DNA from: Blastocladiella emersonii ATCC 22665
Lineage: Eukaryota > Fungi > Blastocladiomycota
Reading direction: 5' to 3'
Length of the DNA: 64,000 nucleotides
NCBI GenBank assembly: GCA_025594325.1
Contig: JANHCV010000006.1
Span: 930,001-994,000 of the forward strand
A model generated the notes under the pieces. The model had not been told where the DNA came from. It ran no database searches and saw only the letters and a program-made list of their open reading frames with translations. Shown in pieces: positions 37,947 through 62,916 of this stretch; positions within the stretch are counted from its first letter, which is position 1, and every line of letters starts with the position of its first letter. The position numbers and the translations under genes are program-made.

Positions 37947-38010
37947 GCGCGTTTCAGCGCGAAAACCGGCGCACGCGGCCGTCACGCGAGCGAGCGGAAA
38001 CCAGTCTTGA
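37947..38010 (+). promoter_or_regulatory. Copy A of a duplicated 46-bp element containing E2F/SCB-like GCGCGAAAA and several CGCG cores
   Basis: 37947-37992 matches 44430-44475 at 45 of 46 positions, with looser similarity for a further 18 nt or so. Confidence 0.6.
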
Positions 38011-38507
38011 CCTGGCAGGACCTGGGGGCTCGAACGCCGAGGCCGAAGGTCGAAGCCGTGGGGCCGAGGCCCGTCTCGACAAGTACTATAAGTCGCCCTG
38101 GGGGTCTCGGCACACCCCGCAGCGTGTCCGCGGGGCTGTTGTCGCCGCCGCCGCCGCCGCCGAAGGGCCCCATGAAGCATCATGCACCGCCGTCGTCCGG
38201 CACCGACACGCCGGCGAACGCGATCGCGGGAGCCGTACGTCGCAGCCACTGCTGTGAGGACCGCGGACGGCCCCCGCAGCGCGAGTCGGCGTCCGTCGCG
38301 CGCTTCGTCGTGGCGCAAACCCAGGACGGGTCGGACCGGGTGCCGCCCCGCCGCTTCGGCTTCCTTCTCCGCTCAGGGGGGGCTGCGTTGGTAGTTTCGG
38401 CTTGGCGTTGAGGCGGCCGAGGGCGGCTCGGAGGCTCGCTGGAACGACTGGGATTCTCTCTCTCCCTCGCTCTCCGCCGTTGAGACAAGCAACCTCAGAA
38501 AATTGCA

Positions 38508-39224
38508 ATGTTGGCTTCGCACGAACGTGTACCCTCGGCAGACCACGTCCACGGCCCTCGGTGTTTGGAGTGGGCCGCGCGCCGTGGTGCTGCGGGCCAG
38601 CTCTCGTTGGCGGCCGTCGGCCCCTGCGCGCGCGCACCCGCCTCGGAGCAGACCCTCGGGGAGGTTGTCGAATCCTCTCGGGATCGCATGTCCGATGTTC
38701 TCGATGTTTCGCACCAGCTGAAGCGCATTCACAAGGAGGCGCACTCTCGAGTCACGTTCGCGGTCTAGGAGCTCCAAAGAGCAATCGATTTCTTGACTCG
38801 AGTCTGTAACTCAATGATGCGCCGTCCGAGCGAGTACCATGTTCTCCTCGCTCAACTTGCCATGTTCTCCTCGCTCAGCTTGAGCCGCGCCTTATCGACC
38901 TTAACGCCTTCTTGGCGCGTGCGGGGGGAGGTTCTGGACCTCGTCAACGCCTCGGCCGCCAAGCTCGGAGGTGAGTTCACGGACCACGGCTTCCTCTCGC
39001 CATTCGCCACGATTGCAGGCGCTATCACGCTTCTTGGCGAGGCGGCATATCTCAAACGAATCGTTGGGACCCCCTTTGGCAAACTCTTTGAATGCGTCGA
39101 GCAAGCAGATCAAGCTATCGTCTCGGCCGGCTATGACTTTGCTGAAATGCGTGCTCGCAGGACGGGCATTGCCAACTACCCTCCCTGCTACTACCACGAG
39201 CAGCGAGGCTGGCAACACTCGTGA
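38508..39224 (+). pseudogene. Orphan helical-protein reading frame interrupted by one in-frame TAG (38766-38768)
   Basis: ORFs 38508-38768 and 38793-39224 share a frame and read as continuous protein-like sequence across the stop. The TAG could instead be a splice acceptor. Confidence 0.3.
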
Positions 39225-40477
39225 CGCAGAACAGGACTTGAGCCTCAATGTATTTCTTGATTCTTCACTGATGTCAACCGTAGATCATCTTTTGAAAGAG
39301 AGGCATTTCGGCTCAACGCACTAGCGGAGCCCCCCAACTCACTGACCCTGGCGCATGCTGAACACCATCACGTCCCGGACTCGATAGGCGCCTCGCACAT
39401 TCCGGGCACACTGAAAGACTGGGCGCTTGGGTTCGGAACTTGCAATTCTGTTACGTTGCACCAAGTCGTTTGTAGCCTTCTAGGGTCGGGAGCCGTCGAC
39501 AACCTTCCGAAACGCGAAAGAACGCGAAGTGGCTCAAGCGTCACGTGTGTGGCGCGTCGCGTCGCGTCGCGCAACGCGTTACGCGTTGCAACGCGAGTTC
39601 CGTTGCAATCCGCCGCCGATCACCACGGTCTCAATACCCAGAGGCTCTACGCAAGGGTGAATCACGGCAATCATGATGCAACGCGATGCTGAAGCTCATG
39701 AAACGCGCAGCGCTCGGCCGTCGTCGCGAGCGCGGCCTCCCAACTTGCTTGACGGACCCCGAAGAGTGCGATTCAGACTTTAAATCATCTGATTCGTATT
39801 TGACGCACAGAAAGTCGCGGAGCGACGCTGCGCTCCGCGATGGACGGACTTGCGACCCGCGCGACCAAAGAACGGCCTTGAAATGGCTAGGTCCTCGCGA
39901 TTCAATCATTTCCGTCATGACGTAACTATTCTGCTATTTTGGCTGTCCTCGGTTGCATCGACTCAGTCGGATATGGCGGCTGGGCCAGGGACGCCGGAAC
40001 TGCGTTGACGAGGGTAGGACTCGCGCTTTGAACCGCGCAAGGCGAAGCGAGCCCCGCGAACACGTGCTGGTGAGCTCACGCGAGCTCAGCTCGATGTCAC
40101 GCGCGCCGTGCGAGACGCGTTTGCGAGACGCTCGCGCGAACACGCACACAAGTCCTTCGCCCACGTAGCGACGCGGCAACGGCTCCTCGCAATGGATCTC
40201 TCCCAGCAACGGCAACCGAGTCACATGGGCGACTGGCCTTCGAGCTCGGTTTCGTTCAGCCGAGTCAGTCGGTCAGTCGGGCGCCGCGGGCCCGGTCCCC
40301 CACGCTGCTGCCTCCCTCCCTCTCTCCCTCCCGCTGCGCCGTGCTGCCTCCCTCCCTCTCCCCTCATCGCCGCTCGACCCGTCTCCCCTCCCGATTCTCC
40401 CTAGTGGTCCTCCCTCGTCGATTATCACGCTTCAAGATTGCCTCCCGGCTCCAAGGAAACACCCCCCGCAGCAACAC

Positions 40478-42541
40478 CATGTTCGCCATCACCATCTCGT
40501 CGCCCAAGGTGCACTCGCAGTCGCAGTCGTCGGCGCGGTCCACCGTGTCGCCCAAGCCGGCCGCCAAGAAGTCGTCGCTGTTCTCTTCGTCGTCGCGCGC
40601 GCCCAAGGTCCCGCTCGCTGCCGTCCATACCCATACCCTCAACGTGGCTGCTGGCTCGGCCACGGCGGCGGCGGGCGCGGGCCCCGCGAAGCAGCGGTCG
40701 CCCATGGACCGCCTCGCGGCGTGCATCAAGACGGCGTTCGGTCGACTCGTCCCCGGCCGCAAGCGCGCGGCCAAGGCGGCCAAGATGGCCAAGACGGCGG
40801 CGGCTCAGGCGGCGGCTCCTGCTTGTTCTGCGTCCCCGGCCACCTCCATGGCCCGCCTCGCCAAGCAGCAGTCGACGTCGCAGCACCTGTCGGTCGAGAA
40901 GTCGGTCAAGGACTTGTACGTTGCATCCAGTCGCGACTCGTGGTGCTGCAAGTACTGGCACTCATCTCGTTCTTCGCCTCGTGTAGCACTACCTCCGCTA
41001 CCACCACCTTCGGCTCGCGGCGCAACAGCTGCCGTGACAGCAGCAGTCTCGCGCTCGACGACGTCGAGGTGGCGGTGGCGGCGGTTCCAAGTCCAGCGGT
41101 CGCGTCGGACTCGACGCTGCCGGCTGGCACAGCTTCCGAGGTCGGTACCAATACCAGCGCCAGCTCCACGACGGCTGCGCAGGCCGACGGCTCTGGTACC
41201 GATTTCGAGGACGAGGGGCTCGCCACCGAGTCGCTCGTGGCCACGGACCCGACTACCGAGATCCAGCTCCAGATCTCGTTGTCGCTCACGTCCGAGGCCG
41301 AGCCCAAGGTCCAGGCGGTCGACCCGATCGCCATCATCGAGGAGTACGAGGAGGTCAAGCAGGACGGCCCCGTCGTCGAGGCCGCCGTCGAGCGGGAGCG
41401 CCGCGACTCGGGCGTCGCCGAGGACATTGCCCAAGGTGTCGCCGCGGTGCTCGCCGTTCAGCAGCTGCAGCAGCACTCGGTCGCGCAGCAGCAGGTGGTG
41501 TCGGTCCAGCTGCAGAACTCGGTCGAGCAGCAGCAGGAGTCGGCGGTCGAGCTGCTCGAGGTGCCCATCGCGCCAACTACGACCGCGTTCCCGTCGGTGC
41601 CCGAGCTCGCCGCGGTCCCGTCGGTGCTCGTGCCGCCGGCGCAGGTCCCAGTCGTCGTCAACTCGGCGCCCGTGACAACGCCAGGCGTCGCCGAGACCGA
41701 GATCCCCGCCGCCGCACCGGTCTTCATCCAGGTCGCTGACGTCGAGGTCCAGGACGCGCCCGTGCAGTCGCCGGCCGTGGCGCGCGTGGCCCACGCTATG
41801 CTCGCGCTCCTCAACATGTTCCCGGCCACGGCGTCGCTCGCCCGCGACCAGGCCAAGAACATTGCGACGCACCTCGCGCCGTCGCACCTCGCCGTCGACC
41901 TGTACAAGTACGCGTGGTCGAGCTCGGCCGCGCGCAAGTGCGGCACGTCGGGCCAGGTCATGCTCGCGACGCCCGTCAGCGTGTCGCGCACCATGTGCCC
42001 GGTCGAGTTCGTCTGGTGGGGGTCGCGCCCGATCCCCGTGGCGCTGCTCCGTGGCACGACCGATGCCGAGAAGATGGCCGACACGACCAAGGTGACGATC
42101 GGCCAGCTGTACCAGTTCGTCGCGGCGGCGCTGCCCGACGACGAGCTCGAGCGGCTCGCGGTGCTCGACGAGGTGGCCGCCGCGTACCCGGCCCAGCTCA
42201 AGCCGCTCGCGCTCGTGCTCGGGTTCATGTTCCTCAAGGCCGGCAGCAAGCTTGCCGACGCCGTCACCAAGCTGCTCGCGCTGTGGTGGTTCGACGGCCG
42301 CACGCACCCCACCGTGGCACCGGGTGCGCTCGACACGGTCGGTGGCGAGCAGGCGTCCGACAAGATCAAGGCCGTGTGGCGCGAGCTGCTGGCGGCGGGC
42401 GCGCGCGAGTACCGCGACACGATCCGGACAGACTTCCTGACGCCGGCCGAGTTCATGCACGACAAGCGCACCGCGGACGACCCCGCGCTCGTCCGCGCAA
42501 TGGCCAAGGCCAAGGAGACAAAGAAACCGGCCGAGCAGTGA
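40478..42541 (+). CDS. Uncharacterised protein: basic N-terminus, acidic low-complexity middle and a roughly 250-aa folded C-terminal domain; 2 exons (intron 40916-40986)
   Basis: Strong host codon bias. A GTACGT..GTGTAG intron joins MFAITISS.. to ORF 40721-42541 in frame. Confidence 0.75.
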   Translation, partial: HVRHHHLVAQGALAVAVVGAVHRVAQAGRQEVVAVLFVVARAQGPARCRPYPYPQRGCWLGHGGGGRGPREAAVAHGPPRGVHQDGVRSTRPRPQARGQGGQDGQDGGGSGGGSCLFCVPGHLHGPPRQAAVDVAAPVGREVGQGLVRCIQSRLVVLQVLALISFFASCSTTSATTTFGSRRNSCRDSSSLALDDVEVAVAAVPSPAVASDSTLPAGTASEVGTNTSASSTTAAQADGSGTDFEDEGLATESLVATDPTTEIQLQISLSLTSEAEPKVQAVDPIAIIEEYEEVKQDGPVVEAAVERERRDSGVAEDIAQGVAAVLAVQQLQQHSVAQQQVVSVQLQNSVEQQQESAVELLEVPIAPTTTAFPSVPELAAVPSVLVPPAQVPVVVNSAPVTTPGVAETEIPAAAPVFIQVADVEVQDAPVQSPAVARVAHAMLALLNMFPATASLARDQAKNIATHLAPSHLAVDLYKYAWSSSAARKCGTSGQVMLATPVSVSRTMCPVEFVWWGSRPIPVALLRGTTDAEKMADTTKVTIGQLYQFVAAALPDDELERLAVLDEVAAAYPAQLKPLALVLGFMFLKAGSKLADAVTKLLALWWFDGRTHPTVAPGALDTVGGEQASDKIKAVWRELLAAGAREYRDTIRTDFLTPAEFMHDKRTADDPALVRAMAKAKETKKPAEQ

Positions 42542-42798
42542 TTGAATGAGTGGTGTCGATGCCTTGTAAGCCCATTTTCCTAGTTTTGTTTGCCCATCCC
42601 ATTCATTGTTGTCCGCATAGGTTGTTGTTTTCGCGGGCATCGGCGGCGGCCATGGCCGTGGCGACGTTTCTCGCCCGCCTGACGACCGAGTAATTTGCCC
42701 TTCACGTTCTGTACCACTCATAGTTTTAATCCATCTGTTTTTGCGTTCCTCTGATCGACTCGTCCGTTCTCTCATCTCGCTTGGCATCAGTGCAAGGC

Positions 42799-43413
42799 TC
42801 AAAGCTCGATGATGTTGACCTCGACCTGCATCCCACACCCCTCGCACACGTCGAACCCCTCCTTGTCCTCGTCGGGCTTGAAGTCGTGGACGTGGGCCTC
42901 CTCCTGCTCGGCCCACAGCGAGGTGCGGGTCGCGTTGCGGAGCTGGGCGAGCTTCTTCTTGAACTTGGTCTCCTTGCGCTTGACCTTGTCGTCTTCGCGG
43001 CGCGCGTACTCGGCGTCCATGGCGTCGAGGCTGCCCCACTTGTCGATGGCTTTTCGATCTCGCCGCGCAGGTACAGGTACGTGTCGTAGTACGTGTTCTT
43101 GAGCGGGTTCGGCTTGCGTCACACCTTGAAGTTGCCGACCACGGTCAGCTCTTCCTCGGTCAGCAGGTAGTCCTACGTCGGGTTCGATTCGCGGGTTAAC
43201 GAGCAGTGAAAGGATGGGTTGAGCGCGGGCGTGGCGTACCTGGCGGGCCTCGGTCTTGGTGAGCAGGGCGTACTTCTCGGGCAGCTTCTCCTTGCACGCC
43301 CAGCGCACGTTGACGTCAAAGTGCTCGACGTAGCGCCTGTCGAGGTCGAGCGAGCCGCACTCGACGCACTCCGGTGCGAAATCGGGGTCGAGAGGGACGG
43401 CTATCGTAGTCAT
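42799..43413 (-). pseudogene. XPA: DNA repair protein XPA/RAD14 homologue with a nonsense codon, a frameshift and a lost zinc ligand
   Basis: CVEC zinc finger, KYALLTKTEARQDYLLTEEEL, KPNP, YLYLR and KWGSLDAMDAE. CGC replaces the third Cys (43305-43303), TGA lies at 43121-43119 and a frameshift at about 43051-43054. Intron 43239-43173. 5' exons probably extend towards 44140 but are not resolvable. Confidence 0.8.
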
Positions 43414-44429
43414 GCATCAGTGAACCAACGTGCGCTGCCGCTGTTGTTGCTGTTGGGCGGCCGCACCTGCGGCAGCCTCGGCGGCGGGGTGGCGATCATG
43501 ACGGGTTTGTCGGCGAGCGCGTCCTCGTCATTGATGGAGGGGAAGGCGAACCGGCCCGAGCAGGGTCACGTAGGTGGCGTAGAGCGGATCGAGGCGCGGG
43601 TGGCCGTGGAAGGCGAGGGCCCGCGACGGGAAGTACTGCAGCGGCGGAGTGCGCACGGGGAGCGTGGGCGAGCGAGGCGTTGGTGAGCAGGCCGCCGAGC
43701 GCCGCCCTGATGGCAGTCGTCAATTACGGAGAGAACACCTAGGCGCGGGAGGTCCGTTCAGCATTACGAAACCGCTGCCGCGCGCGAGCGCGGAGAGGAT
43801 GGTCGCGTACCTCGGGGTGGCCATCGACCGCCGCTCGGGCCCGTTGAGCTTGAAGACGCCGGTTTCGAGCAATTGCTGGGTCGGGCTATTCTCTGGCTGC
43901 TACACGTGGAGGAGCGGGTTGGTTGGTAGAGGCCTGTGTCGAAGCGGGTCGCGGCAGCGAGATCGAACAGCAGGGCGGCACGCCGCAGCTGGCTGCCGAT
44001 TGAGATCAAGATGCGCTTGTGGAAAGAGGTTACCTTGCGGATCTCGGGCGTCGAGGTCGTGCTGCAGAGAGCGGCGGCGGCATCGGGCGTGGGCTGTCCG
44101 TGGACGGCACGCGCGCGGGTGGCGCGATGGCGATGGGGACGCGGGCGGGCCACTCGCAGTGACGGCAGCGGATGGCCAGCTTGCCGCCCGGTGCCATGGT
44201 GGGTGAGCGTGGTCAGCAGAAGGCTGCCGAGCTCGCTGCGGGTCGTCGTGGTGCGTGCAACGGGGCGGCGATTCATATCGAGCCGGACATGGCCGAAAAG
44301 ATGCATGAAGTTCCAGAGGGTAGATCACATAGAGCCAAGTCGGGAACAGGTGTGCGGAGAGCGTAGCGATTGAGGAGGGAGCAGAGCGGCGGCGGGGTCC
44401 GTTCCGCGAGGCGCATCGCGTCAGAGGAA

Positions 44430-44492
44430 GCGCGTTTCAGCGCGAAAACCGGCTCACGCGGCCGTCACGCGAGCGTGCAAAACTGGTTTTGA
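44430..44492 (+). promoter_or_regulatory. Copy B of the duplicated 46-bp element, between the XPA locus and NIC96
   Basis: 45/46 identity to 37947-37992. Lies about 130 nt upstream of the NIC96 ATG. Confidence 0.6.
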
Positions 44493-61896: not shown

Positions 61897-62916
61897 TTAG
61901 TGGCAGCCGTCGCCGTAGTAGCCCGACTCGTAGCCGTGGCCGCTGTCGCCGTAGTAGCCCGACTCGTAGCCCTTGGAATCGTCGCCGTAGTAGCCCGAGT
62001 CGTAGCCCTTCGAGTCGTCGCCGTAGTAGCCCGACTCGTAGCCCTTCGAGTCGTCACCGTAGTACCCGGAGTCGTAGCCCTTCGAGTCGTCGCCGTAGTA
62101 GCCCGAGTCGTAGCCCTTCGAGTCGTCGCCGTAGTAGCCCGAGTCGTAGCCCTTCGAGTCGTCGCCGTAGTAGCCCGAGTCGTAGCCCTTCGAGTCGTCG
62201 CCGTAGTAGCCCGACTCGTAGCCCTTGGAATCGTCGCCGTAGTAGCCCGAGTCGTAGCCCTTCGAGTCGTCGCCGTAGTAGCCCGAGTCGTAGCCCTTCG
62301 AGTCGTCGCCGTAGTAGCCCGAGTCGTAGCCCTTCGAGTCGTCGCCGTAGTAGCCCGAGTCGTAGCCCTTCGAGTCGTCGCCGTAGTAGCCCGAGTCGTA
62401 GCCCTTCGAGTCGTCGCCGTAGTAGCCCGAGTCGTAGCCCTTCGAGTCGTCGCCGTAGTAGCCCGAGTCGTAGCCCTTCGAGTCGTCGCCGTAGTAGCCC
62501 GAGTCGTAGCCCTTCGAGTCGTCGCCGTAGTAGCCCGAGTCGTAGCCCTTCGAGTCGTCGCCGTAGTAGCCCGAGTCGTAGCCCGAGTCCTTGCCGCAGT
62601 CGTCGCCGTAGTAGCCCGAGTCGTAGCCCTTCGAGTCGTCGCCGTAGTAGCCCGACTCGTAGCCCTTGGAATCGTCGCCGTAGTAGCCCGAGTCGTAGCC
62701 CTTCGAGTCGTCGCCGTAGTAGCCCGAGTCGTAGCCCTTCGAGTCGTCGCCGTAGTAGCCCGAGTCGTAGCCCTTCGAGTCGTCGCCGTAGTACCCGGAG
62801 TCGTAGCCCTTCGAGTCGTCACCGTAGTACCCGGAGTCGTAGCTGCCGTACGAGTCGTCGCCGTAGTAACCCGAGTCGTAGCCCTTCGAGTCGCTGCCGT
62901 AGCCGTAGCCGGTCAT
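61897..62916 (-). CDS. Gly/Tyr/Asp/Ser tandem-repeat protein (339 aa), 27 copies of GYDSGYYGDDSK
   Basis: ATG 62916 in an ACCACCATG context like other genes here. All codons are host-optimal and substitutions between units are synonymous or conservative (D/E). No signal peptide. Confidence 0.8.
   Translation of the reverse strand: MTGYGYGSDSKGYDSGYYGDDSYGSYDSGYYGDDSKGYDSGYYGDDSKGYDSGYYGDDSKGYDSGYYGDDSKGYDSGYYGDDSKGYESGYYGDDSKGYDSGYYGDDCGKDSGYDSGYYGDDSKGYDSGYYGDDSKGYDSGYYGDDSKGYDSGYYGDDSKGYDSGYYGDDSKGYDSGYYGDDSKGYDSGYYGDDSKGYDSGYYGDDSKGYDSGYYGDDSKGYDSGYYGDDSKGYESGYYGDDSKGYDSGYYGDDSKGYDSGYYGDDSKGYDSGYYGDDSKGYDSGYYGDDSKGYESGYYGDDSKGYDSGYYGDDSKGYESGYYGDSGHGYESGYYGDGCH
61900..62905. repeat. Coding minisatellite, 36-bp unit, about 27 copies
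   Basis: Near-identical GTCGTCGCCGTAGTAGCCCGAGTCGTAGCCCTTCGA units with no spacers. Confidence 0.95.

Follow-up and report, generated by a model that had tools for sequence, protein, structure and literature searches.

The closest described systems to the locus reported here are Rad14 of S. cerevisiae (PDB 5LCL, 5A39, and 5G32) and human XPA (1XPA and 6RO4), together with the unprocessed pseudogenes that arise by partial segmental duplication. The locus is a gene fragment in the fungus Blastocladiella emersonii ATCC 22665, derived from that species' orthologue of Rad14 and XPA, and its exons 2 and 3 code for the zinc finger, the DNA-binding core (XPA_C), the C-terminal helix, and the Cys-containing tail. 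The fragment lies within a 64-kb stretch of DNA (hereafter "the window"), which corresponds to positions 930001–994000 of the 2,021,495-bp contig JANHCV010000006.1. Positions 42799–43430 of the window (minus strand) are very probably an unprocessed, 5'-truncated duplicate pseudogene of B. emersonii rad14/XPA, with nucleotide excision repair (NER) served by the intact parent gene, which encodes P0002.

Sequence data

The assembly was generated from PacBio HiFi reads (6.37 Gb for 34.27 Mb), polished using Pilon with 65-nt Illumina reads, and purged of duplicated contigs (PMC9730499). By our own division of the two figures, the HiFi depth is ~186x. Four runs of one sample (X1–X4) contain the stretch and were compared as Logan contigs with a 98% likeness cut-off. 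The parent locus was extracted from the same contig and is numbered separately (L001), with exon 1 of P0002 starting at L001 10001. The polarity of substitutions was assigned by alignment with eight outgroup XPA/Rad14 proteins, from B. britannica, Catenaria, Allomyces (two), Kickxellales (two), and Ascomycota (two). The features of both loci are listed in Table 1.

Table 1. Features of the window copy, the parent rad14 gene, and the duplicated block. Positions without a prefix are window coordinates.
Feature	Position	Strand	Remarks
Inverted segmental duplication	38456–43430		blastn 86–92% identity to L001:10464–14829; ~4.9 kb
Neighbour gene P0038 (663 aa)	40479–42541	+	orphan, lineage-specific
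rad14 exon 3 copy	42799–43172	-	374 nt versus 378 in parent; stop codon 42801–42799
86-nt "intron" of P0001	43039–43124	-	GT..AG; spans the TGA and the deletion
Intron 2, retained	43173–43239	-	67 nt, GT..AG, versus 60 nt in parent
rad14 exon 2 copy	43240–43400	-	161 nt, equal in length to parent; encodes zinc finger
Intron 1 remnant (3' end)	43401–43430	-	MAFFT alignment with L001:10458–10489
Window copy (GenBank model P0001, 153 aa)	JANHCV010000006.1:972799–973413	-	annotators' model for the window locus
Parent rad14 (P0002, 320 aa)	JANHCV010000006.1:768960–770047	+	complete, three exons
Parent exon 1	L001 10001–10424		followed by intron 1, 65 nt
Parent exon 2	L001 10490–10650		followed by intron 2, 60 nt
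Parent exon 3	L001 10711–11088		

The parent rad14 gene

A protein search with the 204-aa open reading frame (ORF) of the window copy (42802–43413) as the query identified two B. emersonii ATCC 22665 entries annotated as "DNA repair protein rad14", P0001 and P0002, both encoded on this contig. The two loci are ~203 kb apart in opposite orientation, and their surroundings differ: the parent is flanked by genes for a NIPA transporter, a kinesin, and an amine oxidase, and the window copy by genes for Nic96, an M16 peptidase, and actin. Translation of the three-exon parent model reproduces the deposited P0002 exactly. The protein carries DSRAGFL in its N-terminal part, CVEC...VCWAC with all four zinc-finger Cys residues, FKAWRKPNP with a Trp where the window copy has TGA, HDMYLYLR, and GEIEKYAIEKWG. 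The XPA_C domain of P0002 scores 66.3 bits against a Pfam cut-off of 25, and the XPA_N score of 23.6 bits is slightly below its cut-off of 27.1, as is that of the B. britannica orthologue. The alignment with full-length yeast Rad14 (5lcl_B) spans residues 56–314 at E 3.6e-37 and takes in the N-terminal region of the YEYNF..MQDS..GF motif; P0002 can be aligned with human XPA as well. With a C4 zinc finger, an XPA_C domain above the cut-off, and near full-length similarity to Rad14, P0002 is, as judged from its sequence, an intact Rad14/XPA orthologue. Around residues 103–109 of P0002, within exon 1, DSRAGFL takes the place of SGGGFL in B. britannica and RGGFL in Catenaria and Allomyces, such that Ala stands in for one Gly of the Gly-Gly-Phe motif of the ERCC1-binding type.

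An earlier note, made from the window alone, had claimed that XPA/RAD14 appears inactivated here, that a real loss would mean either NER deficiency or a functional paralogue elsewhere, and that a second XPA copy should be sought. The frame in the window is dead as claimed, but XPA is not inactivated in the organism: the search yielded an apparently intact paralogue, the complete 320-aa P0002 on the same contig, and of the two consequences foreseen only the paralogue holds. Since a complete XPA is kept ~203 kb away, the window copy appears to be an ordinary pseudogene and not a case of repair loss. Read alone, the window copy would suggest a false NER defect in a zoosporic model fungus. No XPA-module protein other than P0001 and P0002 was found in B. 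emersonii by a word-based protein search (lengths of 112–560 aa), and a third rad14 copy was rejected on the same search.

Structure of the window copy

The XPA/Rad14-like frame of the window runs from 43413 to 42799 on the minus strand and contains one GT..AG intron. Exons 2 and 3 share ~92% nucleotide identity with the parent in blastn (tblastn E 9e-71), and descent from an XPA/Rad14 gene is thus evident from both blastn and tblastn. Intron 2 has diverged far beyond the exons, with 14 mismatches and 7 gap columns among the 100 alignment columns in which it lies. Ahead of exon 2, base-level alignment extends the homology by only ~25–30 nt upstream of the intron 1 acceptor, to a breakpoint at ~43426–43430. 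The remnant of intron 1 contains the sequence CTGAT, which resembles a branch point, as well as the AG acceptor (43402–43401). It also contains, at 43413–43411, a fortuitous ATG, which serves as the start codon of P0001.

Upstream of ~43430, no homology to parent exon 1 was detected by blastn, base-level alignment, or comparison of the flanks, and parent residues 1–141 have no tblastn match within the 64-kb window (best E 2.7). Because the homology begins inside parent intron 1, the window copy never possessed the promoter or exon 1, which encodes ~141 aa and carries both the start codon and the ERCC1-type motif. The sequence LRDPARAG, which had been proposed as a vestigial ERCC1 motif, belongs to this unrelated DNA, and the proposal is therefore withdrawn. 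An upstream frame (SGRFAFPSINDED..., followed by a GT donor) was considered as a substitute first exon and rejected, as it is out of phase with the acceptor at 43401 and shares no homology with the parent.

Two marks of a duplicated pseudogene were found, namely an intact parent elsewhere in the genome (P0002) and introns at homologous positions accompanied by a co-duplicated non-coding flank. The retention of intron 2 and of part of intron 1 argues for a duplicate made at the DNA level and against a retrocopy. By contrast, the features of a functional XPA are lacking. The C4 zinc finger pattern CX2CX17CX2C is broken (CVEC, 17 residues, RWAC, with Arg as the third ligand), the XPA_C (PF05181) core is interrupted by a TGA and a 4-nt deletion, and neither the N-terminal ERCC1-motif region nor the native start codon is present. 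Even when the window copy is read piecewise, XPA_N reaches only 21.1 bits (cut-off 27.1), and the piece between the TGA and the deletion reaches 16 bits for XPA_C (cut-off 25).

Lesions, polarity, and selection

Several independent lesions, not of the homopolymer type, had been claimed to kill the XPA-like frame, and all of them are present in the assembly sequence. The codon CGC at 43305–43303 replaces the third zinc ligand (C174R), which is Cys in the parent and in all eight outgroup proteins. The in-frame TGA at 43121–43119 (FKV*RKPNP) corresponds to TGG in the parent (W213), and Trp is found at this position in six of the eight outgroups. The Met before LYLR reads ACG (M226T) and is conserved in 8/8 outgroups. 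The fourth lesion had been described as a frameshift in an A-run; the frame does change at 43051/43050 (GEIEK / AIDKWG), but comparison with the parent shows a 4-nt deletion and not slippage in the run. The missing letters are GTAC or TACG of the parent sequence ...GAAAAGTACGCC..., by which Tyr237 is lost and the frame is shifted. In addition to C174R, the exon 2 copy carries K152E, S157G, K163R, and seven synonymous changes, and the exon 3 copy carries R219L, H224Y, and further changes. In total, the exon 2 and 3 copies are separated from the parent exons by 12 synonymous and 12 nonsynonymous substitutions, one nonsense mutation (TGG>TGA), and one 4-nt deletion.

The alignment with the outgroups places C174R, W213*, R219L, H224Y, and M226T as derived changes on the window copy, together with the missing aromatic residue at position 237. 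At residue 212 (A212V), on the other hand, the window copy retains the ancestral Val. The one-sided damage and the ancestral state at this residue together indicate that the two sequences evolved independently.

By the Nei-Gojobori method, dS between the window copy and the parent is 0.116 and dN is 0.030, a ratio of 0.26. Strong constraint on both copies (omega 0.05) was rejected by a binomial test (p=2.6e-5), whereas a neutral window copy paired with a constrained parent was not rejected (p=0.105); omega values of 0.5 and 1 for the window copy were indistinguishable in this test. The ratio of 0.26 is lower than the ~0.5 expected under full neutrality since the duplication, which may reflect past constraint or gene conversion. 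The C-terminal 83 aa of the window copy differ from the parent at four residues.

Read and assembly support

The truncation junction is bridged without differences by contigs of X1 (10.7 kb) and X2 (1.8 kb), from 43307 to beyond 44100, and contigs of the same two runs bridge the distal junction (38200–38952), again with no difference. The assembly required purging of duplicated contigs (PMC9730499), and the two rad14 copies could accordingly be suspected to be alleles or haplotigs of one locus misplaced on the same contig. However, two bridged junctions, non-coding divergence of 8–20%, a distance of 203 kb, opposite orientation, and entirely different flanking genes all oppose this reading, and its chance of being correct is close to nil.

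At 43305 and 43119, no contig of X1–X4 at 98% likeness has an alternative letter. The CGC and TGA codons rest only on this lack of a contradicting contig and on the quality of the assembly. Position 43050 lies outside the contig coverage of X1–X3 at the 98% cut-off. The depth at this hole is ~393, compared to ~143 in unique DNA; it follows from this excess that the two paralogues were probably collapsed in the Logan contigs, with the collapsed path falling below the cut-off. The X4 contig, with a depth of 6x, covers the site and has the deletion, together with an additional T following 43050 (A5 and not A4). If this T is real, the deletion amounts to net 3 nt and is in frame. Contigs of X3 and X4 have loose ends at window positions 38909, 42771, and 43064, which we take to resemble 454 adaptor and loxP-linker sequence. 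Reads from 454 sequencing are prone to homopolymer-length errors, and the HiFi and Illumina data were for this reason given more weight than the X4 contig. Whether the run is A4 or A5 leaves the verdict unchanged, as neither the truncation nor the TGA nor the loss of the zinc ligand is affected by it.

The extra base of the low-depth X4 contig in the A-run at 43050, the hole of X1–X3 at the same place, and the capacity of Pilon to mis-polish paralogous regions with 65-nt reads lend some weight to the view that errors of assembly or polishing produced the lesions and that the window holds a second rad14 gene, shorter but functional. We consider this view extremely unlikely. The HiFi assembly is ~186x deep, the frameshift is a 4-nt deletion and not a homopolymer slip, and the deletion recurs in the very contig with the extra base. 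Mis-polishing with reads of the parent would have raised the likeness of the copies instead of lowering it, and no contig of any run has another letter at 43305 or 43119. Moreover, if all three lesions were reverted, exon 1 would still be missing at a junction that contigs of two runs bridge.

The GenBank model P0001

The annotated product of the window copy starts with MTTIA, retains VRWAC, and leaps from ...GNFK to WGSLD... across the 86-nt "intron" listed in Table 1. This segment is homologous to coding sequence for parent residues 212–241, the most conserved part of XPA_C. BLASTP between P0001 and P0002 shows a 30-residue gap, and P0001 covers only positions 1–22 of the 51 in the XPA_C profile. 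Owing to its homology to parent coding sequence, the "intron" is most likely an artefact of ab initio gene prediction. A splice that rescues the frame was rejected, as the sole GT..AG pair in this region belongs to the 86-nt "intron", which cuts out the conserved coding core together with the TGA and the deletion. Reassignment of the stop codon or editing of the TGA at the RNA level was also rejected, being needless with exon 1 missing and the other lesions present.

The unspliced 204-aa ORF (43413–42799) is open from ATG to stop, and its middle consists of out-of-frame and intron sequence. Long open frames are frequent in DNA of 68% GC. The locus could nevertheless be read as a live, neofunctionalised short gene, in which P0001 or the 204-aa ORF would keep the XPA C-terminal region and either regulate NER factors or compete with them. 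This reading could draw on the open 204-aa frame, the 153-aa product predicted in GenBank, a pairwise dN/dS of 0.26 that is under the neutral expectation, and a C-terminal part of 83 aa with just four differences. Against it, the start codon of the short gene sits in an intron remnant, the 86-nt predicted intron is a homologue of coding sequence whose removal takes out the core of the DNA-binding domain, a zinc ligand is lost, and the 204-aa ORF is out of frame and intronic in its middle. The data for the window copy are also compatible with omega values of 0.5–1, the promoter was not co-duplicated, and a search for RNA runs of this stretch yielded none. A live short gene is therefore highly unlikely, and we retain the interpretation of a truncated pseudogene.

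The main value of the locus concerns annotation, as one of two rad14 entries in GenBank derives from a gene fragment. The P0001 model bypasses a stop codon and a deletion by splicing, and the repertoire of repair genes would be overestimated if it were counted.

The duplicated block and the neighbour gene

In blastn, L001 10485–14829 corresponds to window 43405–38456 at 86–92% identity. The duplicated block consists of the rad14 fragment (partial intron 1, exon 2, intron 2, and exon 3), the 3' intergenic DNA, and a complete neighbour gene, whose copy at the parent locus encodes P0039 (682 aa). The neighbour gene has no Pfam match, and no relatives beyond P0038 and P0039 were found by a word-based search. 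The low-complexity N-terminal part of the two proteins has diverged with indels, and the C-terminal ~250 aa are almost identical.

At the nucleotide level, the 3' part of the neighbour gene, which codes for its folded C-terminal domain (window 41860–42554 and L001:11323–12020), differs between the copies at only 5 of 700 positions, with 400 nt identical, compared to 8–20% divergence between the parent locus and the window in the DNA flanking this tract. By our own estimate, ~20 synonymous differences would be expected in the tract at a dS near 0.12. Since only 5 differences are present, the tract was likely homogenised by gene conversion or by a later exchange. The identical tract stops ~250 nt short of the rad14 fragment and does not include it.

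The proximity of this tract is relevant to the possibility that the rad14 fragment is not inert. The fragment might be transcribed from the intergenic region shared with the divergent Nic96 gene and modulate NER through a regulatory RNA or a short polypeptide comprising the XPA C-terminal part. Alternatively, as gene conversion is suggested within the block at a distance of only 250 nt, the fragment might trade sequence with intact rad14 and serve as a reservoir of inactivating alleles. We assign such a role a very low probability. The rad14 fragment is instead presumed to be functionless, and the block would persist through retention of the neighbour gene, with the rad14 piece as a passenger.

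The copies of the block differ in other respects. Window positions 39781–40516 (736 nt) have no counterpart at the parent locus (L001 13517–13521), and some run contigs with a joined form, in which CAACAA stands between the two sides, skip these 736 nt; the latter are most likely contigs of the parent locus. The parent-locus copy of the neighbour gene has an in-frame TAG at L001:12176–12178 in its low-complexity part (VVATT*IHAG). P0039 lacks the residues around this TAG, and its model appears to excise the stop via a short intron. The parent-locus copy of the neighbour gene may thus be partly decayed itself.

A transposon or repeat at the breakpoints was considered and rejected, as a blastn comparison of the two flanks with L001 and the window revealed only a direct repeat. 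The repeat is 49 nt long (49–64 nt), CGCG-rich, 96% identical between its copies at 37947–37995 and 44430–44478, and absent from L001; the copies lie ~0.5 kb and 1 kb beyond the ends of the duplicated block. Comparison of the window with itself also revealed a long tandem array at 61905–62902, with a 36-nt period and ~90–94% identity between shifted copies.

Origin of the window copy

The following sequence of events is proposed. A segment of ~4.9 kb would have been copied, in inverted orientation, to a site ~203 kb off on the same contig. The copied segment would have extended from the interior of rad14 intron 1 through exons 2 and 3 and the 3' intergenic region to the end of the downstream orphan gene, which was included in its entirety. 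The rad14 part would have arrived without the promoter, the start codon, and exon 1 (residues 1–141) and would have been unable to produce Rad14 from the outset. Drift would then have removed the zinc ligand (C174R), introduced the stop (W213>TGA), exchanged conserved residues (R219L, H224Y, and M226T), and deleted 4 nt. The neighbour gene was kept, its C-terminal domain being homogenised between the copies, while the rad14 fragment would have been carried along. A single duplicated block would thereby have had contrasting fates, with a truncated passenger that decays and a complete neighbour that is kept and homogenised.

Comparison with known systems

Unlike Rad14 and XPA, the window copy is without the N-terminal third of the protein, has Arg as the third zinc ligand, contains a stop and a 4-nt deletion in XPA_C, and gives Pfam scores below the cut-offs even piecewise. 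It resembles the unprocessed pseudogenes that result from partial segmental duplication, with which it shares an intact parent, introns at homologous positions, truncation at the breakpoint, multiple lesions, and perhaps relaxed constraint. Nothing essential separates it from typical members of that class, although the adjacent gene is retained with a conversion-like tract and the annotation still presents the fragment as protein-coding rad14.
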